IMG/VR virus record: IMGVR_UViG_3300043411_001777
Span: 142,090-206,089 of that record
Length of the DNA stretch: 64,000 bases
Direction: 5' to 3' (one strand)
Part shown: piece by piece, positions 4,690 through 60,273 of the stretch
Numbering within the stretch: the first letter of the stretch is position 1
How the letters are laid out: each line of letters opens with the position of its first letter
The notes under the pieces: generated by a model
Databases searched by the model: none
What the model saw: the letters and a program-made list of their open reading frames with translations, nothing else
Told to the model about the DNA's origin: nothing
Position numbers and translations under genes: made by a program

Positions 4690-4692
4690 CAG

Positions 4693-5274
4693 TTAACTCA
4701 CAGTGGAGGTGGTATTTCCGCTCGTCGCGAAAGTCGGTGTGGTGGTTACCCCAGCCACAACCCCAATGCCGGCTGACACGTTTAGAAGTGACGAAACGGT
4801 ATGGGCAAGCCCTATGGATAAGGATGGGACCAGTAATCCCGATCCTAGGGATCCAAGTAAGCTAGAATTGAGAATGGGTATCAACAAACTTGGATCCGCT
4901 GCGACTAGCGCAGTGTCTACCCCTGTCGCAACTAAAGGAGAAACACCGCTGTAGTCAGCCTGAATTGTAAAGACTTCCGAAATGATAGATGCTATCACAC
5001 GGGACAAGCTAGGCGAAGTAACCCCATTGAACCCTGCCGCCTGCATTTGCGCCTGGGCCAGTGTGAAATTAGCAGGAACCGCCAACTTACCTTGGACGCT
5101 GCCCACCCCAGCAAGACCGGAAGCGATCCCAGTTATACGGATAGTGGGGGTCCAAGCTAAAACGGCCTGGACAAAACCAATAGACAAGCGCTCGAAATTG
5201 ATTCCGAGCATTGGGATTTCGGCTACCTCACGTTTACTCAGGCACGTCGTAAGGAACGTTGGAAAAGATAGCAC
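4693..5274 (-). CDS. Small Gly/Ala/Ser-rich baseplate/spike-associated protein
   Basis: 193-aa ORF abutting the spike gene; function inferred from position only. Confidence 0.55.
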   Translation of the reverse strand: MLSFPTFLTTCLSKREVAEIPMLGINFERLSIGFVQAVLAWTPTIRITGIASGLAGVGSVQGKLAVPANFTLAQAQMQAAGFNGVTSPSLSRVIASIISEVFTIQADYSGVSPLVATGVDTALVAADPSLLIPILNSSLLGSLGSGLLVPSLSIGLAHTVSSLLNVSAGIGVVAGVTTTPTFATSGNTTSTVS

Positions 5275-36350: not shown

Positions 36351-36778
36351 GACTTACCCCCATAAGGAACCCGAACTACATGAGTAAGACCTTCCCACTC
36401 AGATTTAGCTAACGGGCCCACAACTAATACACGAATCTCGCTGTTAAGCATTTTTGCGACCATGTCTTTGGTCCCCTTTCCGCCCGGAAAGGCCACCCCA
36501 ATAATCGTATGGCCCTCTTCACGAAAGACCAAAAGCTTGTCGAGCATAGCGGAATTGCGCACCAGACCCGCAGCGTTACCCAACCGGTCCCATTCAGCCA
36601 TGACCGTAAGAAACGGATACCCCCTTTCCTTAGCCCATAGCTGTGCGAGTCTGTCTGCCCCTTTAGCCCCACCTTCTTGGATAGTGAATGGGGTTTTTGC
36701 ATAAAGCCGATCTAACAGACCCCACACAAAAGACTTATCCGCAAAGTTACGGCCTCCCGTAATCTGACAGTACAACAT
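36347..36778 (-). CDS. SLOG family (YspA/DUF2493-like) protein
   Basis: ITGGRNF...EGGAKGADRLA...AAGLVRNSAML...AFPGGKGTKDM; ATG 36778 TAATG-coupled to thyX. Confidence 0.85.
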   Translation of the reverse strand: MLYCQITGGRNFADKSFVWGLLDRLYAKTPFTIQEGGAKGADRLAQLWAKERGYPFLTVMAEWDRLGNAAGLVRNSAMLDKLLVFREEGHTIIGVAFPGGKGTKDMVAKMLNSEIRVLVVGPLAKSEWEGLTHVVRVPYGGKS

Positions 36779-38070
36779 TACCGGGCCGTAATGGTCTGGT
36801 CGCCACGCCGAACATCCCAATCATCCGGGTCCATATCCACGTGGAGTAACACTTCAGGATGGGTGAATGCGAGATCGCCGATCATATTGTGGATGGCTTT
36901 ACGAAGAGTTGGGTGTACAGCTTTTCCAGACCGTAGCTCCAAAACATACACCGCCGCTGGTAGTCCATACGTGACCTGGAAAGGTACTTTGAACCCGAGG
37001 GGGATGAGATACTGAGAGGCAACATCATCCTCAATCGAGGAAATCAACTCAACCTGCTCAGAAATCAGCGCCTCAGCCTCTGCACGCATTGGCCCGAGCT
37101 GCTCTAGATACCAGGACTCAAACCCCAGATCCGTCGTCAACTTAGGGACTCGGCAGACACCATTTCGGTGGCGCTGAATGTCGCGCCAGGACCCGTAATC
37201 CAACTCCCCTCGGAACGATAGGGATCCAAGCTCCGCCATATGCGCTGGCAATGCCGAACCTCTGGGCCTCGTAATCAGCATTTCGTAGTAGGGCTTTAGA
37301 GCGCCATCATCAATAGTGGACCGGATATCCCACTTCTTTGGAGGGAGAGGCTTATAGCTCCCGTAAGTGGACGCCTCCCAGACAACTCGATCCGGGTACA
37401 ACTTCTCCCCAAAGCTTGATGGGTATTGCTCACGCAATAGTGCCAGGGCGCCAGAAGCCAGCTCCCGCACTTCCTGCAAAGGATGCTGGATCAACAGCCC
37501 TAAATGGTCAGAGGCCTGCCGTAGGTTTGTATGCCAGGAGAGCTGGGTGGTTTTACCAGCCGGAAGGAACCCCCGCAAAATGTCAAAGGTACGAGCTTTG
37601 ATCGCTCGCTCGTATGTGTCCTCTTTCTCAGAGGACTTACGCGGGTATTGAGACCGAACCCACTCCAAAACCGGAGCTTGCTTTTCCGCATAAAAGCGCT
37701 CCCACCTATCAATAATCGTCGTAGCCGTTTGCCCAATCGGGTTAACCACAGGGCGATTCGCCATATCGATATAGCGGGTGGAAGTTTCCTGTCCGGAATA
37801 GAGCGACCAATCCTGAATAGCCTTAGCGGCTAGAATGGAAACGTTCTCGAAAAACAGCGTCGTGGAGCCACAATCCGCAATGGACTTATGCCCATAACCG
37901 ACAACATACTTTTCGACGAATTTGCCCGATCCGACCTTACGGACCTTCTCTAGGTGAGTCTCCACACTCTCTCCGGAACGAGAGTAGAGTGCCTGCACCA
38001 TAGCCAAATCTTCGGAATGAAGGCCGTCCTCAAGAAAGAGGACGGCCTTACCAACTTGCTTCTTGAGCAT
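36778..38070 (-). CDS. thyX: FAD-dependent thymidylate synthase, long tandem-domain type
   Basis: YGHKSIAD, QETSTRY, RGFLPAG, RDIQRHR, ELRSGKAVHPTLR; probable start ATG 38070. Confidence 0.85.
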   Translation of the reverse strand: MLKKQVGKAVLFLEDGLHSEDLAMVQALYSRSGESVETHLEKVRKVGSGKFVEKYVVGYGHKSIADCGSTTLFFENVSILAAKAIQDWSLYSGQETSTRYIDMANRPVVNPIGQTATTIIDRWERFYAEKQAPVLEWVRSQYPRKSSEKEDTYERAIKARTFDILRGFLPAGKTTQLSWHTNLRQASDHLGLLIQHPLQEVRELASGALALLREQYPSSFGEKLYPDRVVWEASTYGSYKPLPPKKWDIRSTIDDGALKPYYEMLITRPRGSALPAHMAELGSLSFRGELDYGSWRDIQRHRNGVCRVPKLTTDLGFESWYLEQLGPMRAEAEALISEQVELISSIEDDVASQYLIPLGFKVPFQVTYGLPAAVYVLELRSGKAVHPTLRKAIHNMIGDLAFTHPEVLLHVDMDPDDWDVRRGDQTITAR

Positions 38071-38072
38071 CG

Positions 38073-38234
38073 TTACTTCGTTTCCTTTGGAATGCCATTC
38101 TCGACAAGAGAACGCAACCACTGCTTGGTGGAAATAGGATTGTCTAACCGTTCAATGTGTTGAAGTAACATCACAACATGCTGTTTGCATTGCAGCAAAC
38201 AGAGCTGCTTTATTTGCTCTCTATCCTCATCCAT
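38073..38234 (-). CDS. Small hypothetical protein (53 aa, MDEDREQIKQLCLLQC...)
   Basis: Translated by hand; fills the gap, stop 2 nt before the thyX ATG. Confidence 0.5.
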   Translation of the reverse strand: MDEDREQIKQLCLLQCKQHVVMLLQHIERLDNPISTKQWLRSLVENGIPKETK

Positions 38235-38552: not shown

Positions 38553-40883
38553 TTACTTTTCAACCGTGAAATACGCCGAGGAAGCAAAGACGGAAACGAG
38601 CCCGCCATCAGGAACCTCGAAAAAGGTCCCCTCCTTCTCCTCTTTCGAGAGCGCCAAGGCCGGATACTTCTGAGCCAATTCCTCAGCATTCATCACTGCT
38701 ACCCCATCCGGAACCAGCCCCGTTGCCCCAACCTGGAAAACAAGATCCCTAAACCCGGCGTAACAAGAATCGATCCAATTACCGATCTGGCGAAGCTCCT
38801 CATTAAGAGCGAGGACCCGATCGTCAGCGGACATAGCCTTTAGCGCCACGTATTCCTTGTCGAAAAAGGATGCGAATTCCTTATCCATGATGTCGTCCGC
38901 AGCATTAGGCTTGCCCTTCTTAGGAGGCCCCTTTTCTACCGAAACATCAGCATCCCAAATACCGTCCAACGTCGCCTTAACGGGCCCGCCACCCCGCTTC
39001 ATTACATAGCGAGCATCGAAGAAGGCATTACCCGACTTCATCTTGGATGCAGCCGTAAGCTCAACAGTACCCACCACAACCTCAAAAGAGGTACGGGCGT
39101 CCACCTCACCATTAGCGATCGCGTCCTCCAACTTAACGTAAGTATTAGTCGTCGGGAACGAAACGTAAAGGGAGGGGCTCAAGTAATGAGCCTTCAGCTC
39201 GGCAATCTGCTCCGCCGTGTATTCCGTGGACGAACCCTTCAAGGTCGCCTTCAAGAGCTTTTGACGAGCGGTCATCCTGAACAGCTCACGAACATCGTTA
39301 CCAGATGGGAGCTGGGCTGCCTTATCACCCACCACAGGGAATTCAGACAGCGCGATCTTTACGGGCGCGTTCGGGTCAAACCCATCCACAGGCACGAACC
39401 CAGCCTTCGCTAGACAGGCCCAGGCTCGCTTGTTAGACACCTTCACCATTAGGTGAGAAGCATTGACCGCACCATCACCCACAATCGTGTAGGCGCGGAA
39501 ATCCGACAGCTTTAGAGGGATGCCCGCAACCTCATGGATGGGCTTGCCGGTCTTCCGGTTCACCAGCTCAATCGCTTGAGCGATTGTGATGTTTGCCGTC
39601 GGGCTACTGCGGTTCACATCTACAGACGTGACCGACACCCACTCATCAGTCCCAACGGGCTCCGTTTTGAGCGTGGGCTCTTCCAAAGAACCGTCCTCTT
39701 TCCGGATACCCGCAACCCGCTTTAACCCACGACGCTTATAGATAGACTGCAAGTCGGGCAGGTTAATCCGGATGGAATCCTTGTTAGCTTCCAAGATATC
39801 CAGGAAGTCCAACACAGAGGACCCGCCGAACCCAGGAACCCCATAATTACACACCTCGTCGAGAACCGTGTTGAAGACACGGAACTCGCAAGCCTCAGCA
39901 AAGGCCGCCAAATCTGGGTTGGTCAACGCCCGATAATTGTCCAGGGTGAACTTCTTATTCCGAGTCGAACACAGGGCAAACTTAGCCTGATTGATCAGGC
40001 CTTCCGACAAGGAAGCCTTAATGAAGGCACATAGCGCCTTCATATCGATATCCTGAGCGTCGGAAGTTGTTCCCGTCACCTTATAGAAGCGCAGGATTCG
40101 AGCCCCTTCTGGGCTGGCACCCCTAACGGTCAGGGCATTACGGCTTCCAAGAATCTTCTTATCCGCATTTGACACATACACCACAAAATCGGCACCCTCA
40201 GTAGGGATTTCGATTGTGGGTACAGTCTTACCTGCCAACTGACTAAACCCAGCGTGCAAGCCCTCGTATACCTGCTTCGCATTTTTGGCCCGAATCGTCG
40301 ACCCACTCAGCTTGTTACTGATGCTCGCGAGGAACTGAAAATCACAGTAGTCACTGTAACCTATGGTATTGACGAATACTCCGGGGTGCTTTTGGAGAGC
40401 CTGGACGTATAGATCCACGTCCCTACGCTCTGTCGTAGGGGAATAGTCGTTAGCATAACCATCCGTGTGGAGAGAAATGCACGTCAGCTCACCCTCCCGA
40501 ACAAGAGATTCCGCAAGCTTTAGGCTCTGCGAGATACAGGTCATTGCCGTTGCACGAATGCTACGAAGTTCCTTTAGGAAGGAACTGCCCGCCTGCACAA
40601 TTTCGGCTACGGGAACACGGGAGAAATGAAGCTTGACGTCCCCATGAGACGAATAGGAAATGAGGGAGACTAGCATTTCCGGCGTGTGGAATTCTTCCAA
40701 CGTCAGGAGCTTTTCGATCATAACCTTTGCATCATCGATAGAGCCATACATCGAACCAGAACGGTCGATATCGATGATATGGTGGCCGGGTTGAGCCGTT
40801 GCCTGGAGCTGTGGGACAGGCGACTCCACCGCCTGCCAAAAAGAATGGATCTGCCCATCGTACTTCCGAAGTGTAAACTGCAT
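38553..40883 (-). CDS. von Willebrand factor A domain protein (776 aa)
   Basis: MIDAS motifs DRSGS, T, TDG. Confidence 0.8.
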   Translation of the reverse strand: MQFTLRKYDGQIHSFWQAVESPVPQLQATAQPGHHIIDIDRSGSMYGSIDDAKVMIEKLLTLEEFHTPEMLVSLISYSSHGDVKLHFSRVPVAEIVQAGSSFLKELRSIRATAMTCISQSLKLAESLVREGELTCISLHTDGYANDYSPTTERRDVDLYVQALQKHPGVFVNTIGYSDYCDFQFLASISNKLSGSTIRAKNAKQVYEGLHAGFSQLAGKTVPTIEIPTEGADFVVYVSNADKKILGSRNALTVRGASPEGARILRFYKVTGTTSDAQDIDMKALCAFIKASLSEGLINQAKFALCSTRNKKFTLDNYRALTNPDLAAFAEACEFRVFNTVLDEVCNYGVPGFGGSSVLDFLDILEANKDSIRINLPDLQSIYKRRGLKRVAGIRKEDGSLEEPTLKTEPVGTDEWVSVTSVDVNRSSPTANITIAQAIELVNRKTGKPIHEVAGIPLKLSDFRAYTIVGDGAVNASHLMVKVSNKRAWACLAKAGFVPVDGFDPNAPVKIALSEFPVVGDKAAQLPSGNDVRELFRMTARQKLLKATLKGSSTEYTAEQIAELKAHYLSPSLYVSFPTTNTYVKLEDAIANGEVDARTSFEVVVGTVELTAASKMKSGNAFFDARYVMKRGGGPVKATLDGIWDADVSVEKGPPKKGKPNAADDIMDKEFASFFDKEYVALKAMSADDRVLALNEELRQIGNWIDSCYAGFRDLVFQVGATGLVPDGVAVMNAEELAQKYPALALSKEEKEGTFFEVPDGGLVSVFASSAYFTVEK

Positions 40884-40983: not shown

Positions 40984-41876
40984 TCAAATGTAAGACCGCG
41001 GAGAAAGTACCCCACGACCCAATCTTGGGCCCATCGCGCTCGTTAATCCGATTCCAAACCGAGGTTGTGAGAGACCCTTAATGTACTTGACGGTCTCTTT
41101 CTTCGTCTCTTTAGCTGATTCCATTCGGCCGTTTGCCAGCTCAGCCAAAGATTGGAATTTGTCTGCCTTAGAGATGTCAAGGCTAACCCCTCCAATACTG
41201 TACGAAAATTCGTCCTGGACCCAATTTACAGCCAAAGCAAACATGGCCCAATGAACAGCGCTCCAAAAGACGGGTGTACGCCACGCAGCTTGCTGTTGAA
41301 CCAATTGGTCAAGTCCGGGGATAAAAGTCCTCGGAGCCTCCATATTCCACCAATCTAAGCCCATCCGCAGGTACAGCTCTAACTCGTAATCCTCCCAGAC
41401 ACGACCGAAAATGCGGTTGTAGCTGCCGATCCTAGCCTCGTGCTCGGGAGGTCTGAAATGATAAAACTGATCAGGCGCCTGGTCCCGAATTAGGATCCTC
41501 AAATCCCTTATAAGTTGAGTAGTTGCAGCGCTATAGCCAACCGTGGATAGCTGCCCCTCTCCAACAACGGTGAATTCCTGAGCCACCAATTGAACCGTGG
41601 ACCCGGCATTCTGTTTGAACGTCCACTTAATCCGATATGTCCCTGATTGGGCGGTAGAAGGCACATGGAAATGCGCGTAGTATTCTCCAACGATTGGATT
41701 TTCCGGAGTCCGAGTTGCGGACCCAATCAACACTTCTGCCTCAGGGGGCCCTACATCCACGAGATAGATCGCATAGGTTATCTCATAAGCGTTTGTGGGG
41801 TTGTCATCGGAATCCTCCAAAAAGATGGTGAGGTCTCCGCGTTCCGTGGTGTCTCCTGGTTCAAACGAGCTGGCCA
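40984..41876 (-). CDS. Head-tail adaptor/neck protein with N-terminal Ig-like domain
   Basis: Beta-sandwich N-terminus (GEYYAHF...GTYRIKW), helical C-terminus with FSYSIGGVSL; ATG 41876 behind AGGGGG. Confidence 0.55.
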
Positions 41877-41891
41877 TTCTTCCCCCTAAAC

Positions 41892-41928
41892 GGAAAAGGC
41901 TTTGTTGGTTCAAAACAAAGCCTTTTCC
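41892..41928 (-). terminator. 15-bp hairpin after the paralogue trio
   Basis: GGAAAAGGCTTTGTT/AACAAAGCCTTTTCC followed by GTTT. Confidence 0.65.
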
Positions 41929-46147: not shown

Positions 46148-46515
46148 TTGGCACTCTCTTTCGCAACAAAGCGATCATAGCTGCTAGTGTCTTTCCCCTT
46201 GGAAGCAGCGAGAGACTTAGCCTCTCGCCAAGAATCCACACGCTCCCCGTCAACGTTAGGGGCAAGAGAAACTTGCCCCCCATACCGTTCTTTCTGGCGG
46301 GTTTCCAGAACCCTATTCTTTTCTTCCATTTGCCGTTTGATAGTCAAATTCTTGCCGAACCAACCATCCCCCCTCAAGACAAAGGCTACTTCTGTCGCTA
46401 TTTTCGGAGACTCCGAAGAACAGCTAGGGCAGAATTGGGCCTCATCTCTCTTGGAAATAGGCAAGGTACGGGAGAATTTCTCTCCACACGGACATGCATA
46501 ATCAAAAGCCGGCAT
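46144..46515 (-). CDS. FmdB-family zinc-ribbon protein
   Basis: MPAFDYACPCG...CPSC...FVLRGDGWF. Confidence 0.75.
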   Translation of the reverse strand: MPAFDYACPCGEKFSRTLPISKRDEAQFCPSCSSESPKIATEVAFVLRGDGWFGKNLTIKRQMEEKNRVLETRQKERYGGQVSLAPNVDGERVDSWREAKSLAASKGKDTSSYDRFVAKESAK

Positions 46516-47821
46516 ATTTCCTCATGTAAGCAGCCGCAACCTTATTCACGGAGCGGATTTTACTGTACCGGTCAATTAGGACGTTAAGAGCTGCCACCGT
46601 ATGCTTACAGGCACCGTTTCTATGCTCCGGATCTCGGATAATCGGAAAAGACGCCGTACCCTGCAACGGGCCGTACTGATAATCCTCCGTTGTCCCCCAA
46701 TGCTCAGGACCCTGCCACCGCCAAAAGGGGCATGAACAACTGAGATCCACCTCAGCATCCTGAATTTGGGCAATCTTGTTCGGCATCTTAACCCGAACTC
46801 GATAGTTGTCACCTTTGGAGCCCGTGACATTAAACAGCCAAACGCCGTTTTTACGATCTACGCGAGCAACTCTCACCCCAAGCTTAGAAGCCTTGTCAAG
46901 GATTGCCTTTTGGCAATTGGACAGTACGGAACCTACCGAGCTAGCAAACCGAAACTTAACCTCAGGAACCTTCCCCGGGACCGCCTTAAAGGCTTGAGTA
47001 CGAAGGGCACGCCATTCTGGAACGGTGAGGGGGTAGCCATTCTCAGAGAACCAATCTGCCACCTTAGCATCCCCAACCGACCCATCGCGATACCTCTTCC
47101 AAAGCGGGCTCCGGATGAGGGCTGTAAACAAGTCCGCTAATTGGCGAGGCAGGCTGCTTAGCCAATTAGAGCGGCGATCTTTCCAGCGTTCGATATGAAT
47201 CATTGGGAATTCCCTATTTTGGTACATGGGATCCGCAACCCCATCATCGCCCCCGTATGGGGTTGCACGGTCGATTTTCTCCAGCCCCTTCTGAACTACT
47301 CGATAGAACAACTCCGCCTGCTTACGCCGATCGTCCTTGGAGCGCTCTTTATTGGTGGAGTACCCCCCCGCTGGGAGCCGGTCAAACTTCTCTGGGCGGT
47401 CCCTTCGCAATTGCTGGTCCCTCTTAAAGGTGCCTCGGTTTTTTTTGCGGTCATACCATTTGTCAGACCGACGCTTGACCTTGTTCTTGTTCTTCCGGTA
47501 ATTCTTCTCGTGGTATCTCTTAGCCGGCCCGCGCTGTTCCCGCTGCCTATCCCCATAGGACGGGATTCTAGGCTTATCCGCAGTAGCCTCTACCGACTTA
47601 TGTGTGGGAGGGCTCCACCTATTATTAGGGGCGTCTGTAGGTCGGGGCATTCGAGACGCTGGGTCCGATGGATCGTTAAAGCGAACCCGACCCCCCCATA
47701 GTTGGGGCTGGACATCCGGAGTTTCCCCACCGGGCTTAGGGCTGTTCAGGTCCTTATCTGCCTGATTTAGGGTATCCGGATCCGATTGATACGACACCCA
47801 TCCTGGTTGGTTAGTAATCAT
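46502..47821 (-). CDS. Multi-segment protein with very basic region and SWIM zinc finger
   Basis: YRVRV...SCSCP...CKH; C-terminal KVAAAYMRKYA. Confidence 0.7.
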   Translation of the reverse strand: MITNQPGWVSYQSDPDTLNQADKDLNSPKPGGETPDVQPQLWGGRVRFNDPSDPASRMPRPTDAPNNRWSPPTHKSVEATADKPRIPSYGDRQREQRGPAKRYHEKNYRKNKNKVKRRSDKWYDRKKNRGTFKRDQQLRRDRPEKFDRLPAGGYSTNKERSKDDRRKQAELFYRVVQKGLEKIDRATPYGGDDGVADPMYQNREFPMIHIERWKDRRSNWLSSLPRQLADLFTALIRSPLWKRYRDGSVGDAKVADWFSENGYPLTVPEWRALRTQAFKAVPGKVPEVKFRFASSVGSVLSNCQKAILDKASKLGVRVARVDRKNGVWLFNVTGSKGDNYRVRVKMPNKIAQIQDAEVDLSCSCPFWRWQGPEHWGTTEDYQYGPLQGTASFPIIRDPEHRNGACKHTVAALNVLIDRYSKIRSVNKVAAAYMRKYAGF

Positions 47822-48660
47822 CCGCGCCGCCTAGAACAGGTCTGAGGGCCTGGATCAACCTCACCTTTCCAATACGTGGTGACCAATCGAACCGATCCAC
47901 GCCCATCCGACCGAAAAACGATCGTCAATCCAATTTTAGGATCCGTCCACTCAACAGCATCCGTCATGAGTTGCTTGGTGAGAAAGTCAAACATCGGGCT
48001 TCTAGTTGACTTTAGGTCACTCAACTTCTTGCTAAAGGACTGCAAGGCCAGTCGGATTTCAGGGACCGTAATGCCGCGTAAATCCATTCTGAACTGCACA
48101 TGCGAGCTTAGGCTCATCTCTCGAAAAAGCCCAGCCCCCCGTTCGCCTTCTATCTTGTAGATACGAGCGGCTTCCTGATTGCCTAAATCGTCACCGTCTT
48201 CTACCTTTTCGATTAGGAATGCTCTTTCTGAAGGTTGGCGAACCTTGTCCTCGATCCGATCAGTAACAAAGCACGTCCCGCCCGGATAACCCAACGGTGG
48301 GCTCAGGTCGGCTTTACGCAAAAAAGACGCCGCAACCTTACTGGCCGAGGGCGTCTCTAATGCCTGCTCTACTACGTTTCGGTCTTCAATCGAAAGACGT
48401 GTCTTGAGTGAGGATTTCCCAGAAAGCACCAAAGCGTAGGAGAGGCGCTCCAAATGGCGCTCCAACTTATCCAACCTCTGAGGCACATCCATAATAAGGT
48501 CTCCAGCAATTTGGTAGACCTTTTCCTTTTCCTCGGAAGCCTCGATCAACTGGGTTACCCTGTTTAAGGCCAACCGCAATCTATGGGCTTCAATGCTGGC
48601 CGCAGAAACCCCTTCCGTTAGGAGTGACCATTCCGCTGGGCTTTCTGCCATTTTCTTCAT
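47818..48660 (-). CDS. Coiled-coil N-terminus plus C-terminal DUF4258/RelE-like (BECR-fold) domain
   Basis: SSHVQFRMDLRGITVPEI...TIVF...VRLVTTYW; internal KVAASFLRKA; probable start ATG 48660. Confidence 0.55.
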   Translation of the reverse strand: MKKMAESPAEWSLLTEGVSAASIEAHRLRLALNRVTQLIEASEEKEKVYQIAGDLIMDVPQRLDKLERHLERLSYALVLSGKSSLKTRLSIEDRNVVEQALETPSASKVAASFLRKADLSPPLGYPGGTCFVTDRIEDKVRQPSERAFLIEKVEDGDDLGNQEAARIYKIEGERGAGLFREMSLSSHVQFRMDLRGITVPEIRLALQSFSKKLSDLKSTRSPMFDFLTKQLMTDAVEWTDPKIGLTIVFRSDGRGSVRLVTTYWKGEVDPGPQTCSRRRG

Positions 48661-48709
48661 AACTGACGAATCCCCTCGTGGAGGGGATTCCATCAACTAG
48701 AAACCGAAA

Positions 48710-49615: not shown

Positions 49616-49650
49616 TGCGGTAGTATACCGCAGTTATGCGAATTACCGCA
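49616..49650. promoter_or_regulatory. Divergent promoter/operator region
   Basis: Palindrome TGCGGTA-GTA-TACCGCA plus a third TACCGCA half-site at 49644-49650. Confidence 0.5.
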
Positions 49651-51122
49651 TGGAGAATCTTAGTATGACTAAGCGAATGGGAAGGCTTCTTGAAAAATTC
49701 GGGCAGCGGATCGCCACCTCCAGACCAAGCATGACGCGAATTATCCGTTGGACTGGTCTTGAAGAAGAGGATGCCCGAGAACTCGCTAAGCTTAGTCGAG
49801 AAAAGTACCGGACCCCGAAGGAGGAGCCCGCCAAGCCTGAGCCTAAGGCTAAAGAGCCTGACGGCGGGGAGTTGCTCCTACACGCCAAGTATGTCTACAA
49901 CCCCCAAACAGACACGTACATCACATTCCTGGATCAGGTTCCAAAGCCCATTTCGTTATCCGGACCTACACACCGAGAGATTGTTCGTGCCTACTCCAAT
50001 TTTGACGGGAACCCCGCCTCTCTAAACGAAATTGCCCGCTCCGTTGGGATGCCCCGTCCTTGGCTCATCAAATACCTGCGCGCCCATGAGATCACCCACG
50101 ATCGGGAACCCTTCACACCCGAAGAGTTGATGTCTCGGTCCGACGATGACCTTATCCAGGACTCCCTACAGCTTCGCCGAGCAGCGGTTTACAAAGCCCT
50201 AGAAAAGGCAAAGTGGCAGGAGATCCAGCGCGATGCCACGAAATGGCGCAACTGGGAAGACCACACCCTACGTGCAATTATTACCCGTCTCGGGGACCGG
50301 GCCTCAAGCGAACCCCCTACCTTAGATATCAACCAAGCAGCAGCTCCCTTTGCTTGCGTGTTTGGGCTCACCGATTTCCATTGGGGCAAATACTCGGACG
50401 CACAAGAAAACGGAGAGGCTTACTCCCGTGAACAGGCCCGCTCTATCCTTTTTGACTGCGTTTCAGATGTCATGAGTCGAGTTGCCACTTATGGGGCACC
50501 GGAGAAAATCTATATCCCGGTCGGCTCTGACTTTTTCCATGTAGACAACTCAGAGGGGAAGACCACCTCTGGTACTCCCCAGGACATAGACGGGACCCCA
50601 GCAGAAATCCTTGTCAGCGGGTGCCATTTGATGGAGGATCTTATCACCTCCCTCATCACCATAGCACCCGTCGAGCTAGTTTTGATGTCAGGCAACCACG
50701 ATCGTATGCTTGGAGTTTCTTTGCTCTTGTACCTGGAGGCGGTCTTCCGTGGTAATTCCCGTGTTACCGCCAACCTAGACCGGACACATCGGATCTACAA
50801 GACCTACGGAAAGAACCTCATCGGCTTTGTACACAGCGACGGGGTCAAGAAAACCGTAGATTTGGCAGGACATATGGCTAGGGAAGCCTCAGACGTGTGG
50901 GGGGCTTGCCCTCACCGGACGATCTATACCGGCCATTTGCATTTCGAAAAGACCGAGACCGACACGGCCTTTTCAGTCGTGCGTCGCCAGATCCCTTCGC
51001 TATCAACTACCGATCGCTGGCACAGCTTAAACGGGTTCATTGGTTCCCCAAGGTCGCTCCCGGTTTACCTGCACGACAAAGAGAAAGGGTTGGTAGCTAT
51101 CTTCCACGCCCCCGCCGAATAA
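49650..51122 (+). CDS. Calcineurin-like metallophosphoesterase with N-terminal HTH
   Basis: TDFHWG, GSDFFH, SGNHD, FVHSD, TGHLH; SLNEIARSVGMPR HTH. Confidence 0.85.
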   Translation: MENLSMTKRMGRLLEKFGQRIATSRPSMTRIIRWTGLEEEDARELAKLSREKYRTPKEEPAKPEPKAKEPDGGELLLHAKYVYNPQTDTYITFLDQVPKPISLSGPTHREIVRAYSNFDGNPASLNEIARSVGMPRPWLIKYLRAHEITHDREPFTPEELMSRSDDDLIQDSLQLRRAAVYKALEKAKWQEIQRDATKWRNWEDHTLRAIITRLGDRASSEPPTLDINQAAAPFACVFGLTDFHWGKYSDAQENGEAYSREQARSILFDCVSDVMSRVATYGAPEKIYIPVGSDFFHVDNSEGKTTSGTPQDIDGTPAEILVSGCHLMEDLITSLITIAPVELVLMSGNHDRMLGVSLLLYLEAVFRGNSRVTANLDRTHRIYKTYGKNLIGFVHSDGVKKTVDLAGHMAREASDVWGACPHRTIYTGHLHFEKTETDTAFSVVRRQIPSLSTTDRWHSLNGFIGSPRSLPVYLHDKEKGLVAIFHAPAE

Positions 51123-51128
51123 TACGCT

Positions 51129-51180
51129 AAAAGCCCCTTAGGGTATGGGTAGTACGATTACCATACCCTAAGGGGCTTTT
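51129..51180 (+). terminator. 20-bp perfect hairpin covering the RBS of the next gene
   Basis: AAAAGCCCCTTAGGGTATGG/CCATACCCTAAGGGGCTTTT; ATG 2 nt after. Confidence 0.7.
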
Positions 51181-51182
51181 CC

Positions 51183-51512
51183 ATGCTTACCATTCGAGTG
51201 CGCGATTTCACCACAACTCCAGGCCCTGGATTCAAAACCGAAGGTCCGTTTTCCGGGGAAGAGTTTCGTGAACGCTATTTACAGCCAGCCCTTCTTTCTT
51301 GGCAGAAGGCCCGTTGCGCTACACCGATTACCGTCAATATGGACGGTTCCGAATACGGTTATAGCTCCGCCTTTCTACGCGAAAGTTTCGGACCGCTCGC
51401 CCAGCGTTACGGGACTCGATTCGTCCAACGAGCTTTCCGCATCGTGACAGAAGAAGAGCCTGGGCTTGAAATGGAGGTGTGGTTCTGCGTGGAGAACTAC
51501 TGGGTCAATTGA
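51183..51512 (+). CDS. STAS-like (DUF4325) protein
   Basis: PGP...EGPFSGEEFRE...MDGSEYGYSSAFLRESFG. Confidence 0.8.
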   Translation: MLTIRVRDFTTTPGPGFKTEGPFSGEEFRERYLQPALLSWQKARCATPITVNMDGSEYGYSSAFLRESFGPLAQRYGTRFVQRAFRIVTEEEPGLEMEVWFCVENYWVN

Positions 51513-51702
51513 CTGGATCCATTTCTGTAACCGCCCCAATCATGCTCAGGTGCGTTAACATAGCGCGTACAGCACGCTCACGGGCTTCTACGAAGCCCTC
51601 GCTTTTCTGAAAAAGGCAATCCCTTGGGCCCACACATGGGCACTCCCCCTTCTCGGAACCACCCTCGCAAGTCAACTTGCAAAACTTAGCATACGGTCGA
51701 AA

Positions 51703-51897
51703 TCATGCACGGGAGCGCTCCGGTTGTTCGGTCAAAGTCAAAAAGCCCTGCAAGCCTGAATAGCAGACATCACAGAATAGCTGGTCCTCGAACGCCACAG
51801 TCTCCCCACAACGGGAGCACTCTGGAACCCAAAGCCCACGTTCACGTTCTGGCCGCGTGTCCCGTTGAGGCAACGGCCCGAGATACCGGAATTTCAC
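51703..51897 (-). CDS. Small zinc-finger protein
   Basis: CSRC...CDVC; GTGA-coupled to the HD gene. Confidence 0.6.
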   Translation of the reverse strand: MKFRYLGPLPQRDTRPERERGLWVPECSRCGETVAFEDQLFCDVCYSGLQGFLTLTEQPERSRA

Positions 51898-52499
51898 TGC
51901 CCCAAAGCCATCATTAGGCTTGCCGCACGAATCAGAAACGCAGACTCCACTTCTTCAGGTGGGAGCTTCTCAATCTGAATCGTAGGGTCAGGCTCGGGAA
52001 GAGCCCCCCAAGGGGGGAAGGGGACCTTCAAAAGAGCACGAGCCTCTGTTGCACAAAGGATCATGTCCGCCTTATGAACTTCTGGGGGTGGGGGCCAGTC
52101 AAACCCAAACCTGTCCGCGATTACACACATCAATGTGTGCTCGTAATCCCGATACCCACCAAAGGCGCTTTTAATCGGCGAGGGTACGTCCACCAGCGCA
52201 TACTCACTAGCATCATGAAGAAGCCCAGTCAACTGCAACCTCTTGTTCTCTGGCTGCCAACGCTCAAGCAGTTGAGATACGAGGATACTGTGGTATCCGA
52301 CAGAGTAATGCCATTTACAATGTCCAGCAAACCGGCATTGTAAAGACAATGCATGCGCAATATCCTCCATTGCAATTTGCTCAGGCTTGGGGTTTAGTGG
52401 GTGAAGCTTCAGCCCGCTGTAGGTCTGAATCCAGGCATTGTCCATTGCCTCTCGGGACATAAGAGGCCTAGCAATCACTTCTCGGGACATAAGAGTCAA
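51894..52499 (-). CDS. HD-domain phosphohydrolase (YfbR/YfdR-like)
   Basis: IAHALSLQCRFAGH...YSVGYHS...LLHDASE...AD. Confidence 0.85.
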   Translation of the reverse strand: MTLMSREVIARPLMSREAMDNAWIQTYSGLKLHPLNPKPEQIAMEDIAHALSLQCRFAGHCKWHYSVGYHSILVSQLLERWQPENKRLQLTGLLHDASEYALVDVPSPIKSAFGGYRDYEHTLMCVIADRFGFDWPPPPEVHKADMILCATEARALLKVPFPPWGALPEPDPTIQIEKLPPEEVESAFLIRAASLMMALGQ

Positions 52500-52527
52500 G
52501 ATGACGCTCCTTTAGAGCGTACTACCC

Positions 52528-52986
52528 TTAAAACCGAACGCGGATCACCCGAACAAAGCCCTCCCGAACAGAAGGAGGCTCCATCGTCAGCTTTTGCGCC
52601 ATCGTAAGGATGACCTCGTCAGGTACCCTGCGATCAACCGTACGCGCCTCGTTGCGCTCCAACGCCACCAGAATCGGGGTTTCCATCAGGACCGCCTCAA
52701 CCGGCACACGTGCGCGCCAGGCAGCCCGCAAAAGCGGTGCCCGACTCATGCGTGTGGTAAAGGTGGCGTCGAAGTACACTGCACCGGCTTCCTTGTTTTT
52801 GGAAACCCAAGTGCTCTTACCTGAGGCCGGGATGCCCACCAGCAAAACCAGCTTACGGACCCGTCGATCAGTCAGCACAGCATCCAACTTGGCCATGCTC
52901 TTACGCCATGCGCTCGCCGCACGCTCTTGCGACCAGACGTACTGGCCGTCCTCAGTATAGAGGTAATGGTCAGGGGAAATGATCAC
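52528..52986 (-). CDS. P-loop kinase, AAA_33/polynucleotide kinase-like
   Basis: GIPASGKST, DATF-x-x-x-x-x-R, RNEAR...RRVP; GTG start overlaps the HAD stop. Confidence 0.8.
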   Translation of the reverse strand: MIISPDHYLYTEDGQYVWSQERAASAWRKSMAKLDAVLTDRRVRKLVLLVGIPASGKSTWVSKNKEAGAVYFDATFTTRMSRAPLLRAAWRARVPVEAVLMETPILVALERNEARTVDRRVPDEVILTMAQKLTMEPPSVREGFVRVIRVRF

Positions 52987-53456
52987 GTACGCACCAAATG
53001 AGGAACACACTCAACCCCGGTGCCCTCCACGAACTTGCAGAAGGACACCAGATGGTCGGGCCGATCCTCCCAAATGTGAACCACGCCAAAATCGAACTTG
53101 CTCAGATAACTCCTGAGTACCGCCAGCTTGAACGTTTCCGTTCTCGTGGAACCTCCAGGAGCTAAATGGACACGATCGAATACCAGCCCGACCGACTTCA
53201 TTAGCTCAGGAACACGCCACCGGAAATTCTTGTCTGTCCTCCCCGTTGCTAGAACGGCCAACACGTTCTGGTCTGCAATAGACCTACGGGCTGCCCGTAC
53301 CGTGGATTGGATCCACATCGGCTCAGGAGGCTCAGGTGGCATGAAGGGCTCTTCCAAGGAATGAGGGTGGGACCACCAATCGCCCTTCCAATCCTCGGGT
53401 TGAGGTGGGGACCGAAGCAATGTACTGTCCATATCATATAGGTGCAATTCAAGCAT
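52983..53456 (-). CDS. HAD phosphatase, Swiss-Army-knife RNA repair type
   Basis: YDMDSTLLRSP, WWSHPHSL, LATGR, FK, WEDRPDH. Confidence 0.8.
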   Translation of the reverse strand: MLELHLYDMDSTLLRSPPQPEDWKGDWWSHPHSLEEPFMPPEPPEPMWIQSTVRAARRSIADQNVLAVLATGRTDKNFRWRVPELMKSVGLVFDRVHLAPGGSTRTETFKLAVLRSYLSKFDFGVVHIWEDRPDHLVSFCKFVEGTGVECVPHLVRT

Positions 53457-54657
53457 GGTCCCTCAGCAATCTTTCAGTCAACCCCCGGTCAAAAAGGGAG
53501 GGGTCCTCTAACAGGAAATCACGAGCTTTCGAAGTCAAAACCCCAATCTGGGGGCCTTTTAGGCTCAATTCTTTGATCAGCCTTGGAAAATCAGCCACTT
53601 TTGCAGGCTGCTTCAACGCATCTAGAAAGGCTTCTGGGCTTTTCAAGCGTGGGAGAATCCTCTGTAACTCGCGTTGCTGCTCGGCAGACAGGAACTTGAT
53701 CCGGTCGTTTAGGGGGACCCCAAGATCCAACAGGTCGAACAGGAGCCCGAGCCGTTGGTTGTTTGACCACCCGGCCAGTGTGGCACGGAAAGCTGGGATC
53801 TCAGTCACCATTTCTGCAACCACATCCAACAGGCCAAGCCGCTTCATTTCAAGCAGCGCCTTTTTAGCGGTCGGCTCCACCAACAAGGTGTGGATTAGTA
53901 GGTCGGAAATCGCGTTGTACGGGACTTTCTTGATAAAAGGCGCGTTTCGTCGAATAGAGGTTTCTGTCTCTTTATCCGCTTTTAGGTTGTATTTGCAGTA
54001 GAATTTGACGGCTCGAATCATCCTTGAGGGGTCATCTCGGAAAGTGATATCGGGGTCCATAGGACATCGAAGCACCCCCTCCTTGATGTCCTGAACCCCG
54101 CACCCCGTGAGATCAATAATGTCGGCCAAATCCGCTTTGTCCGCTACTGAAATCAATTTCATCAAAAGGGTATTGGTGCGAAATTCGCGACGCAAAACGT
54201 CTTGTTCAATCGTGGCAGGCTGAACCTCGGACGGTTTGTACCCCTTGCCTCCCGAACCCCCATATGATTCGGAGCGGGCATTTGCAATTTCGATGTTCTC
54301 CCCGCGCAAATTCGATGAACCGAGGAACCAATCCTCGGTTACAGTTAAGATAGCCACCCCGTAATTATTGGTTGCCAAATTACACTTGGCTGGAATAGCC
54401 AGCATTAACTGTCGAGCCACCCACTCTGAGTCATGCCCCATGGCGATAGAATCAACCACAAGGTCCAAGTCCTTAATGTCCAATCCCAGGATGAGGTTTC
54501 TGGGAGCACCCCCCACCAAGTACACGTACTCTCCGACGGGCTCCCCGGTTTTTGAGCGAGTTTTTTTGGACCACTGCCCTAAAAACCTCATCAATGCACG
54601 AGAGGCATCATCCGTCATCCCCTGCTTTAGGTAGGCATCCGCGACTTTTTTAGGCAT
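53449..54657 (-). CDS. cca: Class II tRNA nucleotidyltransferase (CCA-adding/poly(A) polymerase family)
   Basis: YLVGGAPRN...KDLDLV, ARSESY, DVLRREFRTN, DDPSRMIRAVKF; start ATG 54657 (MPKKVADAYLKQG). Confidence 0.85.
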   Translation of the reverse strand: MPKKVADAYLKQGMTDDASRALMRFLGQWSKKTRSKTGEPVGEYVYLVGGAPRNLILGLDIKDLDLVVDSIAMGHDSEWVARQLMLAIPAKCNLATNNYGVAILTVTEDWFLGSSNLRGENIEIANARSESYGGSGGKGYKPSEVQPATIEQDVLRREFRTNTLLMKLISVADKADLADIIDLTGCGVQDIKEGVLRCPMDPDITFRDDPSRMIRAVKFYCKYNLKADKETETSIRRNAPFIKKVPYNAISDLLIHTLLVEPTAKKALLEMKRLGLLDVVAEMVTEIPAFRATLAGWSNNQRLGLLFDLLDLGVPLNDRIKFLSAEQQRELQRILPRLKSPEAFLDALKQPAKVADFPRLIKELSLKGPQIGVLTSKARDFLLEDPSLFDRGLTERLLRDHA

Positions 54658-55492
54658 GTAACCCTCTCTTCGCATAACACTTGGAACATTGACCCCTCAC
54701 TTGCCTGTTTCGGTTAACAGAAGGGCAAGAGGAGCACTTAAATTGAGAATTCTGGGTCAATCGGGGAGTGACAGGGCTCTTTAGGTCAACCCCGGAGCGT
54801 TTACGCCCAACACATCGAGAACAAAGCCCAAAGGCGTGGTGCTTTACGTCCGTTCGATTGCAGCCTGAACAAACAAATCGACCTAGGCTATGAATGGCGG
54901 TTAAATCTACCCCACTCTTAAAGACCCCTATCTCGGACGTATGGATCCCTCTTACAGAGAACCCGAGGGATTCCAAATATGTCAATTTTTTGGCAAAGTT
55001 AGTTTGATATTCGGGGCCGTAAATCTGGTGGTCCCACATGCCCAGGTATTCCCATATTTCATTACCCGCTAACAGCCAATCCACTCGGAAAGGACCGATC
55101 TGTTTTTGGAACTCGTGTGGGACGTTCCTTGCGTGTAACCACGCGTCTATTATTGCCTCATCGTAATACGCCCCTTGGTTTTCGGATGTTCGATACAACA
55201 TCCCATAGGGCGGGATATTGCGACGACGGCGTTCCTTATGTACAAGCCCTTTACTACACCCTAGTATATCCGCCAAGTGTTGATCTGTTAAGTCCCCTAA
55301 CCCTACAGAATCCCATTCGATATTGTAGCTGGGAATGGTCCTGAACGGCGGGATACCTCTCGATCTACGAGCATTCAGCACAGCGGTTTGCGAAACCTCA
55401 AACCGACGAGCAATGTCACAATCAGGGACTTTTCCGAGGTCCGCAACCGAATCCCACTCCACCATATCAACTTTGAGCGGACCGCCCCTCAC
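54650..55492 (-). CDS. HTH repeats + PD-(D/E)xK/Vsr-like nuclease + two Zn fingers (homing endonuclease-like)
   Basis: Two WDSV...D-x-x-[IL]A...R-x-x-R-x-IPP repeats; E...FRVDW...WEYLG; CSGC...GLCSRC and CSSC...GQCSKC. Confidence 0.6.
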   Translation of the reverse strand: MRGGPLKVDMVEWDSVADLGKVPDCDIARRFEVSQTAVLNARRSRGIPPFRTIPSYNIEWDSVGLGDLTDQHLADILGCSKGLVHKERRRRNIPPYGMLYRTSENQGAYYDEAIIDAWLHARNVPHEFQKQIGPFRVDWLLAGNEIWEYLGMWDHQIYGPEYQTNFAKKLTYLESLGFSVRGIHTSEIGVFKSGVDLTAIHSLGRFVCSGCNRTDVKHHAFGLCSRCVGRKRSGVDLKSPVTPRLTQNSQFKCSSCPSVNRNRQVRGQCSKCYAKRGLHA

Positions 55493-55575
55493 AGCACCCT
55501 CCGCTCAAATTCAGCTTTGGCATCCAGCTTAAGCGTAGCCAACAAGTAAAACGTGCATTTTTCAAAAGCCCTCAT
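55489..55575 (-). CDS. 28-aa coupling micro-ORF (MRAFEKCTFYLLATLKLDAKAEFERRVL)
   Basis: ATGA overlap upstream and GTGA overlap downstream. Confidence 0.5.
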   Translation of the reverse strand: MRAFEKCTFYLLATLKLDAKAEFERRVL

Positions 55576-56114
55576 CGGTCAAACCCCAAGGCCTCGTAGT
55601 TGTACTTTGGGACGAAAACTTCCCAGAAATCTCTGTTGTACCGGCCATTTGCTCGGGAAACCTTCTTAGCCCAACGCAATAGGTCCGAACTATGTACCAA
55701 GAACCAACTGTTAACACGCCCCCGTACTGCACGGGGCCCTAAATCAAAATGCGTCCACAGGAAACCTTGGTACCGGAACTTACGCAAACCTTCGTGCTTT
55801 AGTTGGTCTAAGCGTGTTACAACCCCCGGACGGCCCTTAGCCTTCAAGCGTTCCCGTCGGTTATCTAGACTTCGGGGGGACGAGTGTTCTTCCGCCAGCT
55901 CCTCAAAGTTACCCGACACAGGATTCGACCCCAAAAGGAAAGGCTCTATCATCGGCCACAGGAAGGCGTAATAGCCGGTCTCTGGTGGCGCATGGAACCC
56001 ACCCTTCCCAGTGGGGGGCCGTGAATTCAGACCCCCTACACGGGCCAGAATAAGGGTCCCCTGAGAAGGTGGGAGCACCCCTTTGAAAGACAGACCTTCC
56101 CCAGAGCGACTCAT
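55572..56114 (-). CDS. Hypothetical protein
   Basis: 180 aa, basic (FHAPP...YAFLWP). Confidence 0.65.
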   Translation of the reverse strand: MSRSGEGLSFKGVLPPSQGTLILARVGGLNSRPPTGKGGFHAPPETGYYAFLWPMIEPFLLGSNPVSGNFEELAEEHSSPRSLDNRRERLKAKGRPGVVTRLDQLKHEGLRKFRYQGFLWTHFDLGPRAVRGRVNSWFLVHSSDLLRWAKKVSRANGRYNRDFWEVFVPKYNYEALGFDR

Positions 56115-56158
56115 TTACAGCCCCACCACTTCTGCATAGAAACCATGCCAACTCTAAT

Positions 56159-56761
56159 CTATAGCTGGCTTACCGCTGAGGGTCGGAACTCCGCATGCTC
56201 GGGATAAACCCCCGGCGCGAACACGAACCCGAACTCCCCCTGAACGTACTCTGCCTTCGGCACCAGGAAGTAGCTCTGAAGAGTATCCGCCCCCCGACCT
56301 CCGACCTTGGCGCAGACAGCCACGAACCCAGCCGGCACGTCCGGATGCCAGTCCCCCCAAGCCGCCAACACGTCGTAAAGGCGAGGGCTATCCTCCTGAA
56401 ACTTACGACGACGAAGCTCGCGGCTATCCTCCAACGTGAGGACCACACCCGTGACAGCCTGATATGTGTCCGGGTCACCATCCTTCATCGTGCTGTGAGC
56501 CGCCGCCAGCGAATCCTCATCCCACACAGCGGGGAACTTCGAGGCGAAGGTGATGGCGACGATCGCCCAATCACAATCCTCCTCATACCAACCGCCACGA
56601 CGGCGCCAGTGGGCGTCCACCTTGGAATTGGCGAGACGGTCCAGCTTGTATCCGCCATGGCCCGGAGTGTTCACGAGGATGATGCCAGGGGCAACTTCAC
56701 GAGCGAAGTCAACCACGCCCCAAGGACTACGCTTACCAACAAGATTCTCAGTCATCTTCAT
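56159..56761 (-). CDS. DUF7007-like protein
   Basis: SPWG...APGI...TPGHGGYKL...GGWYEEDCDWAIV; start at about 56761/56755 behind GGGAG. Confidence 0.65.
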   Translation of the reverse strand: MKMTENLVGKRSPWGVVDFAREVAPGIILVNTPGHGGYKLDRLANSKVDAHWRRRGGWYEEDCDWAIVAITFASKFPAVWDEDSLAAAHSTMKDGDPDTYQAVTGVVLTLEDSRELRRRKFQEDSPRLYDVLAAWGDWHPDVPAGFVAVCAKVGGRGADTLQSYFLVPKAEYVQGEFGFVFAPGVYPEHAEFRPSAVSQL

Positions 56762-59919: not shown

Positions 59920-60273
59920 GTGATCATTTTTCTTGACGACAATCCGGAACGGCACAAGAGGTTCCTACGCGCCCACATTGGGGAATGTGTTTGGCAAGCC
60001 TACACCGCCCCTCAAGCTATCGAGCTGCTCTCTAAGCACAAGACCACCGAGAGTGACGAAATCTGGCTAGACCACGACCTTAACGGAGAGGTTTTCGTCG
60101 ACTCCAATCGGTCGGATACCGGATTTGAAGTCGTACGCTGGATTTGCAGCAACCTACCCAATATCAAGTGCCCAATTTTCGTCCACTCACTAAACGATGA
60201 AGCTGCACCGCGTATGGTGCAAGCTCTTCAAGCCGTTGGCTACGAATCTGATTGGATCCCCTTTCACTTCTGA
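59920..60273 (+). CDS. Cyclic-phosphate-processing receiver (cREC)-like domain protein
   Basis: IFLDD..R, LDHDL, TGFEVVRW, VHSLN. Confidence 0.8.
   Translation: MIIFLDDNPERHKRFLRAHIGECVWQAYTAPQAIELLSKHKTTESDEIWLDHDLNGEVFVDSNRSDTGFEVVRWICSNLPNIKCPIFVHSLNDEAAPRMVQALQAVGYESDWIPFHF

Follow-up and report, generated by a model that had tools for sequence, protein, structure and literature searches.

Do four adjacent genes near the end of an uncultivated huge-phage record belong to one pathway for the repair of damaged RNA ends, and which ends could such a pathway restore? The genes lie at positions 51894-54657 of the window, which is the whole 64,000-nucleotide stretch analysed here and forms the last 64 kb of the 206,089-bp linear IMG/VR record IMGVR_UViG_3300043411_001777. 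They encode a CCA-type nucleotidyltransferase (NTase), a HAD phosphatase, a P-loop kinase resembling polynucleotide kinases (PNK) and an HD hydrolase. The original prediction, made from the sequence alone, read all four as a split heal-and-rebuild pathway for tRNA 3'-CCA ends damaged by host toxins, rather than one for anticodon re-ligation. We hold with moderate confidence that the first three genes form a module for healing and rebuilding RNA ends and that the HD gene is an unrelated neighbor. This reading is grounded in the families and folds to which the proteins could be assigned, in catalytic motifs that are intact, in the translational coupling of the genes, in a recurrent fusion of NTase and HAD domains, and in the presence of RNA ligases in the same record. 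In the list of open reading frames (ORFs) all four are intact and on the minus strand:

53449-54657, minus: class-II CCA-type NTase, 402 aa; ATG start with a GAGGG ribosome-binding site
52983-53456, minus: HAD_SAK_1 phosphatase of the DxDxT type, 157 aa; PF10307
52528-52986, minus: PNK-like P-loop kinase, circularly permuted, 152 aa; GTG start; PF13671
51894-52499, minus: YfbR-like HD phosphohydrolase; TTG start behind AAGGAG; phrog_318

The predicted adjacency and common orientation of the four genes, with overlaps among the first three, was confirmed. As read from the sequence, the NTase and HAD genes overlap by 8 nucleotides (nt) at the junction ATGCTTGA, and the HAD and kinase genes overlap by 4 nt at the junction GTGA. 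Because these start and stop codons overlap, the NTase, HAD and kinase genes are translationally coupled. The HD gene is not translationally coupled to this trio; a 28-nt gap separates it from the kinase gene and holds its own Shine-Dalgarno sequence (AAGGAG) before the TTG start. An alternative upstream ATG for the NTase is possible at 54675. A scan of the region for promoters and terminators gave no excess over the shuffled expectation, and no operon boundary was drawn from it.

The nucleotidyltransferase and its link to a SAK-type phosphatase

The NTase matches PF01743 (2.6e-12; 47.6 bits against a cut-off of 23) and phrog_2244, 'tRNA nucleotidyltransferase' (4.6e-28). It has motif A (YLVGGAPRN...KDLDLVV), motif B (DVLRREFRTN) and a motif D of the (E/D)DxxR form, which reads FRDDPSRMIRAVKF and which we take, from the literature on the B. 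stearothermophilus enzyme, to template CTP and ATP. Across 42 homologues of 44-59% identity the motifs GG..R, KDxD, D..RR and DxxR are unchanged, and residues G49, G50, R53, D63, D65, D153, R156 and R157, together with D209, R212 and R215 of motif D, are invariant. The AlphaFold2 (AF2) model has a predicted local distance difference test (pLDDT) score of 92.7, and Foldseek aligned about 400 of its columns to the class-II structures 6qy6, 3h38, 5hc9, 1miv and 4x4w (E values of 1e-12 to 1e-10), with a template-modelling (TM) score of only about 0.5, which fits hinge differences. All full-length matches are class-II CCA- or A-adding enzymes and PAP I (3aqk-m), the head-neck-body-tail architecture is found in model and alignments, and no HD domain is fused to the protein. 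Judged by sequence and modelled fold, it is a class-II CCA-adding-type tRNA nucleotidyltransferase. Its sequence does not choose among CCA-, A- and poly(A)-addition, every NCBIfam equivalog score lying far under its cut-off (TIGR02692 at 1.3e-22, score 80 against 439; NF008137, which matches the head only, 42 bits against 451).

The HAD protein matches HAD_SAK_1 (PF10307) at 1.1e-18, with 68.2 bits against a gathering cut-off of 25.6, and its motifs I-IV, namely DMDST (D8, D10), T71-G-R, K110 and ED131, are invariant or nearly so. Relatives in deposited phages were detectable only in uncultured phages of 485-642 kb. Homologues of the NTase numbered 295 in a search of 5.8 billion proteins, and the counts given here refer to the 119 of them that were listed besides the window's own protein; IMG/VR relatives of the NTase and of the HAD were found by an alignment-based search, single-protein scans having given none. 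At least 11 of the 119 listed metagenomic homologues, and 6 of 80 IMG/VR loci, have HAD_SAK_1 fused to the NTase. In most fusions the HAD follows the NTase, matching the gene order of the window, and the fused HADs resemble the window HAD as closely (1e-42) as the best free-standing HADs do. Other domains on the listed homologues are 2H (about 10), an Rnl-type RNA_ligase (one) and InPase (one). HAD_SAK genes of relatives also adjoin cREC in L010-L012, with cREC directly downstream, and PNK-like kinases in L213 and L223.

A CCA-type enzyme is unable to extend a phosphorylated 3' end. Because three phosphoesterase folds are repeatedly attached to an NTase so limited, the fusions suggest a 'clean, then add' chemistry and support a functional pair of NTase and SAK-type HAD, in which a phosphorylated RNA 3' end would be cleaned and then rebuilt. 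The E. coli CCA enzyme, an NTase-HD fusion, follows the same logic by joining a class-II NTase core to a phosphoesterase for blocked 3' ends; it differs in that here the role of phosphoesterase falls to a HAD (and in relatives also to 2H or PAP2), separate or fused, and in that the adjacent HD protein is YfbR-like. A prediction of the NTase-HAD complex scored 0.00, which is no verdict and counts neither way. The pairing by fusion of a CCA-type enzyme with a dedicated putative 3'-phosphatase in many uncultivated huge phages offers a testable model of acceptor-end repair, the tRNA acceptor end being attacked by antiphage toxSAS and other toxins.

The NTase could instead mature phage tRNAs that lack an encoded CCA, with the HAD and the kinase as unrelated passengers. 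Two of 60 related NTase loci do have tRNA arrays within 3 kb, one of 16 tRNAs plus a tmRNA (L101:76-3480) and one of 23 (L103:373-4319), none of which truly encodes a 3' CCA, and about 60% of the phage genome lies beyond the record. But the 206 kb available and the other 58 loci contain no tRNA gene, and the recurrent fusion of the NTase to HAD, 2H and PAP2 would make little sense for tRNA maturation, so we regard this alternative as possible and rather improbable.

The permuted kinase, the ligases and a proposed order of repair

The third member of the trio matches PF13671 (AAA_33) at 4.5e-12 and, weakly, bacterial Pnkp and PNK-3'Pase, and its start agrees with the family start 'MIISPD'. Its top PDB sequence match is the C. 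thermocellum Pnk (CthPnk) domain, followed by mammalian PNKP. Foldseek, run on an AF2 model with a pLDDT of 96.6, again placed CthPnk at the top (2.8e-8); the first 17 matches are CthPnk, mammalian PNKP and fungal kinases, with zeta toxins, PSTK and T4 Pnk ranking lower. The modelled fold is nearer to PNKs than to nucleotide or sugar kinases, and the PNK-like identity given in the original prediction was upheld by both sequence and fold.

CthPnk (PDB 4gp6, 4mde) is the best match in both sequence and structure, and its P-loop, DAT threonine, stacking Arg and lid R..R are conserved in the window kinase as GIPASGKST, YFDAT and ERN..R..DRRVP, the last aligning with CthPnk R116, R120 and R123. In CthPnk these elements bind the nucleoside triphosphate and the first phosphodiester (PMC3902929). 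The window kinase differs in being circularly permuted: the invariant 'SPD' segment, which carries the putative general-base Asp, lies N-terminal to the P-loop, whereas canonical kinases have it after the P-loop. The elements so displaced are the strand and helix that bear this Asp. Canonical phage kinases of 155 aa accordingly match the hidden Markov model (HMM) of the kinase family as a P-loop piece, a gap and a C-terminal piece, and in L228 the 'SPD' segment lies between the two pieces. One relative, P0165, keeps an N-terminal P-loop; as it also has a decayed internal P-loop, it resembles a permutation intermediate. The window kinase further differs from CthPnk in having no Arg at Asp+3 (D38/R41 in CthPnk), in standing free of any phosphoesterase or ligase domain and in lacking a Hen1 partner. 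Its nearly invariant R22 is a candidate stand-in for R41. The locus thus supplies a predicted, naturally permuted polynucleotide kinase.

Full-length permuted relatives in IMG/VR number only 2, and neither these 2 loci nor 3 longer metagenomic contigs have an NTase, HAD or HD neighbor. The canonical cousins of the kinase stand directly beside HAD_SAK-like genes (L213, L223) and Rnl-type ligases (L190, L199, L225), and because of these neighbors a polynucleotide-kinase role is supported for the window kinase as well.

A polynucleotide kinase and a 3'-phosphatase could also serve DNA. The HAD and kinase would then be a split PNKP for nicks with 3'-phosphate and 5'-OH ends, acting with the HD protein, an SbcD-like exonuclease and an SNF2 helicase, and the NTase would be separate. 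The nearby genes are indeed DNA-metabolism genes, the kinase has mammalian PNKP, a DNA-repair enzyme, among its closest structural matches, and HAD_SAK shares giant proteins with topoisomerase IB (TopoIB) in relatives. In LR745208.1, a 485-kb uncultured phage, HAD_SAK_1 is even fused directly to a eukaryotic-type TopoIB core (L007:4971-6497). TopoIB chemistry leaves 3'-phosphoryl and 5'-OH ends, and this fusion hints at the healing of 3'-phosphoryl ends so produced. However, translational coupling ties the window HAD to an RNA-specific NTase, many relatives have the two directly fused, the kinase cousins adjoin RNA ligases, and the 206 kb hold no TopoIB, all of which make a role at DNA ends unlikely.

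The RNA-end module that we prefer would need a ligase for its kinase to be of use. As originally noted, there is none in the window, and searches for RtcB, PF09414 and PF09511 over the whole record matched outside the window only. There, RtcB is encoded at record positions 69043-70353 (E 1e-125), and an Rnl-type enzyme of the RNA_ligase family with an N-terminal OB domain is encoded at 4612-5592, about 190 kb from the trio. The claim that the pathway acts on CCA ends rather than in anticodon re-ligation is therefore not sustained, because a 5'-kinase is pointless for CCA rebuilding alone and is needed by an ATP-dependent ligase. To our knowledge, experiments have elucidated phage RNA repair almost exclusively in T4 (Pnkp with Rnl1). 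The window phage shares with T4 Pnkp and Rnl1/Rnl2, the heal-and-seal system of the anticodon loop, a DxDxT HAD 3'-phosphatase, a P-loop 5'-kinase and an ATP-dependent RNA ligase in the genome. It differs in that its HAD and kinase are separate proteins of other subfamilies (HAD_SAK_1, and a permuted kinase nearer to CthPnk) joined to an NTase, and in that its ligase gene is distant. On gene content, the phage appears able to heal, rebuild and seal RNA. Two cREC_REC proteins are encoded in the record, one of them in the window. cREC is a predicted 2',3'-cyclic-phosphate phosphoesterase (PMC7824862), and cREC_REC is thus a candidate for the otherwise absent step of opening a cyclic phosphate.

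From these parts we infer which substrates would be treated, in what order the steps would run and what would trigger them, as follows. Host ribonucleases activated by infection, or tRNA-modifying toxins, would damage RNA, most plausibly tRNA, leaving 5'-OH ends and 3' ends bearing a 3'-phosphate, 2',3'-cyclic phosphate or 3'-pyrophosphate; antiphage toxSAS enzymes are known to attack the 3'-CCA ends of tRNA (10.1101/2024.07.05.602228). HAD_SAK, perhaps aided by the cREC proteins, would convert such 3' ends to a 2',3'-diol, and the CCA-type NTase would restore the missing 3' nucleotides. The permuted kinase would phosphorylate the 5'-OH and the distant Rnl-type ligase would seal, with RtcB as a parallel route.

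Adjoining the Rnl-type ligase gene is one for a protein with an RF-1 domain of the peptidyl-tRNA hydrolase type (record 5752-6297), and the two may form a pair for ribosome rescue plus repair. The RtcB gene has in a row next to it (record 71893-74354) genes for an adenylosuccinate-synthetase homologue (PF00709, 2e-77), an NT5C-type 5'-nucleotidase and a NADAR protein; a PurA-like phage gene raises the question of a PurZ-type modified-base pathway.

The HD neighbor and the conservation of the arrangement

The HD protein has the HD motifs and matches phrog_318 at 4e-58, with no Pfam match at E<0.01 and no NCBIfam match; PDB 2gz4 matches at 3.5e-14, and YfbR-like and HD profiles match weakly. Its nearest Atlas clusters are YfbR-like/HD_3 and mostly viral. 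The family is large, with 22,143 cluster representatives at E<=1e-3, and 308 phage records carry a member, small temperate phages like ST64B, SfV and the Stx phages among them. In Voja-6 the HD gene is surrounded by genes for DHFR, DNA ligase and the clamp loader. Within 6 kb of the HD gene in the 80 closest IMG/VR loci, an NTase, HAD or permuted kinase was found in none, a homologue of the window's SbcD/Mre11-like exonuclease (49650-51122) in 13 and an SNF2 helicase in 4. We take the protein as most likely a (deoxy)nucleotide phosphohydrolase of the YfbR type, to be grouped with the DNA-metabolism genes next to it. Its gene probably marks the edge of a DNA and nucleotide-metabolism module and is a bystander to the trio. 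The idea that it is a small alarmone hydrolase (HD_4) whose targets are CCA ends bearing a pyrophosphate was considered and rejected, as there is no HD_4 match and the protein is YfbR-like.

The original four-gene pathway, in which the HD protein would do the work of the HD domain in the E. coli CCA enzyme and clear ends that bear a 2',3'-cyclic phosphate or a pyrophosphate, draws on the adjacency and common orientation of the genes, on the lack of a 2H enzyme in the record and on Ochrobactrum phage vB_OspM_OC, whose HD gene, the closest homologue among isolates, has a PNK-'response regulator'-Rnl1 cluster about 2 kb away, but it is very unlikely given the HD gene's own Shine-Dalgarno sequence without overlap with the kinase gene, its YfbR-like/HD_3 grouping, its presence in many small temperate phages without RNA-repair genes, its company in other loci (exonuclease in 13 of 80, trio genes in none) and the absence from all 149 HD homologues of a terminal peptide motif described below for the NTase family. 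The annotation is thus to be corrected on two counts, in that the HD gene should not carry an RNA-repair label and in that ligation is available to the phage.

The true start of the HD gene is uncertain. At the 5' end of the ORF (52445-52495, minus) there is a near-exact duplication, CTTATGTCCCGAGA(A/G)G, with copies 30 nt apart, which encodes LMSRE twice. It lies between the TTG behind AAGGAG and the ATG at 52445, which was chosen by the gene caller and matches the usual start of the family.

How far the trio itself is conserved was judged from about 80 NTase loci, 80 HD loci, 3 kinase contigs, 2 permuted-kinase loci and 8 HAD loci, and here several observations weigh against our reading. The four-gene arrangement is absent from every relative locus compared, and neither the kinase nor the HD gene was seen beside the NTase or the HAD gene in any of them. 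Among five related huge-phage records with an NTase, three of which are 94-100% complete, three have a HAD_SAK gene at 55-240 kb from the NTase and two have none; the permuted kinase is essentially absent from all five. Many of the NTase-HAD fusions sit in giant polyvalent-type proteins and are weaker evidence for a pathway than two-domain fusions, since polyvalent phage proteins by definition combine unrelated activities (PMC5512222). The Arg missing from the kinase at Asp+3 and the location of its putative general-base Asp in the permuted segment also count against our reading. The 206-kb record has no tRNA gene and no 2H enzyme (nor were TopoIB or RlaP found when searched for in it), and with a CheckV completeness of only about 39% some 60% of the genome is missing. 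We know of no biochemical data for any HAD_SAK_1 member.

Because the four-gene arrangement is unique to the window's record among all the loci compared and the HAD is distant or absent in relatives, the trio is a lineage-specific gathering of known RNA-repair parts and not a conserved operon. What endures of the predicted heal-and-rebuild pathway is the NTase/HAD pair, which recurs in relatives as a fusion, together with the PNK-like identity of the kinase; HD membership and the conserved operon fell away. Looking elsewhere in the genome, as had been proposed, brought to light RtcB and the Rnl-type ligase and no tRNA gene in the 206 kb available.

Terminal peptide, giant fusions and genomic setting

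Beyond its catalytic core the NTase carries, as predicted, a short peptide named the KVA tag at residues 3-11:

54625-54651, minus: N-terminal KVA tag of the NTase, KKVADAYLK; flexible peptide before the conserved core

In the AF2 model the tag is a low-confidence N-terminal extension, with pLDDT <50 for residues 1-7. The motif [KR][VI]A.[RK..][FWY][LM] occurs within 35-40 residues of a terminus in 21 of the 119 listed NTase homologues (16 N-terminal, 5 C-terminal), against 0.22 expected from shuffling. Looser forms of it stand at the ends of 4 of 7 free HAD homologues and 4 of 40 kinase homologues. In the window the motif is also found C-terminally on a 439-aa protein (46502-47821, minus) and internally, at residue 120, in a 292-aa protein (47818-48696, minus), and in relatives it is found on the termini of GNAT and ParB_N-like proteins near the NTase and of unknown proteins (L029, L038, L054, L055, L058, L061, L065, L083 and L090). 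Speculatively, the terminal peptide behaves like a movable sorting or docking tag.

In IMG/VR the NTase often lies inside proteins of 1,500-2,800 residues, with architectures such as 2H-NTase-...-TopoIB-GNAT, CPD-like-NTase-HAD, 2H-NTase-HAD, NTase-HAD-2H and NTase-PAP2-TopoIB. Giant examples of 1,700-2,800 aa are encoded at L026:5194-12675, L031:5965-12312, L033:5374-11658, L034:5437-13032, L073:2319-7445 and L089:2467-10887. In L089, and probably also in L096, L097 and L099, the NTase is split by an intein with a LAGLIDADG domain. These proteins are like the phage polyvalent proteins (PMC5512222) in combining domains such as 2H, HAD or PAP2, TopoIB and GNAT, and differ from the window proteins, which are single-domain. 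Polyvalent architectures are predicted to be delivered with the phage DNA (Iyer et al. 2017, PMC5512222). Because the kinds of single-domain protein that bear the tag recur in part among the domains of the giant fusions, tagging and fusion are suggested to be alternative ways to one destination. A tentative and doubtful extension is that the RNA-end repair enzymes of this lineage are sent, by giant fusion or by terminal docking peptide, to a common place, plausibly the virion, and enter with the DNA. If so, the tag would resemble a cargo-loading peptide, the window NTase would be a pre-packaged tRNA-repair enzyme acting before tRNA-targeting defences stop translation, and a sorting signal of this kind would show how huge phages route enzymes.

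The commonest conserved neighbor of the NTase in relatives (10 loci) is a 309-aa protein, encoded in the window at 40984-41913 (minus). Weak Atlas leads connect it to head-tail connector or head-completion proteins, which is no more than a hint. Conserved NTase neighbors at 26-48 kb of the window have almost no sequence matches in PHROGs, Pfam or PDB. The same part of the window encodes a ThyX-like protein (36778-38121, minus) and a VWA-domain protein (38553-40883, minus).

Measured against known systems, the region is a variant of the phage counter-defence kit. The jumbo-phage repertoire of RNA repair includes stand-alone 'Swiss-army-knife' HAD phosphatases, PNK, cREC, RtcB, Rnl and CCA-adding enzymes (Iyer et al. 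2021, Viruses 13:63, PMC7824862). The CCA-type NTase, SAK-family HAD, PNK-type kinase, cREC, RtcB and ATP-dependent ligase of the present phage are all in that inventory. Its components are separately distributed there, whereas the window NTase, HAD and kinase are translationally coupled. Set against the literature that we found, four features seem to be new, namely the recurrent NTase-HAD_SAK coupling (which the founding SAK paper, Burroughs and Aravind 2016, may already have), the permuted kinase, the terminal tag and the NTase within phage polyvalent-type proteins.

Other genes around the trio are as follows:

54650-55492, minus: HTH_17 protein with C-terminal Cys-rich repeats; PF12728, 1.5e-6
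51703-51897, minus: 64-aa ORF with CxxC...CxxC; its start overlaps the HD stop by 4 nt
49650-51122, plus: Mre11/SbcD-like DNA-repair exonuclease; phrog_704, 5e-51
59920-60273, plus: cREC_REC protein; PF20274, 1.5e-16

At the junction ATGCCTAA, which includes the GAGGG ribosome-binding site, the HTH_17 stop overlaps the NTase start by 8 nt; because of this overlap the NTase is translationally coupled to the HTH_17 gene too, and the latter is probably in the same transcription unit. An HTH_17 homologue lies 6 kb from the HAD-cREC pair in L010 and L011. The 64-aa ORF has no family match in Pfam or PHROGs.

A completeness of about 39% for a 206,089-bp record implies a huge phage of roughly half a megabase, and the sampled words point to a freshwater metagenome as its source. 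The region gave no blastn match among isolate phages. Short, mostly near-identical pieces of window positions 51000-56500 were found in wastewater, estuary and sludge metagenomes of other studies. Read assembly in four other metagenomes went no further than unitigs of about 150-280 nt; most are near-identical to the window, and they carry no information on linkage. The phage or a very close strain is widespread at low abundance.

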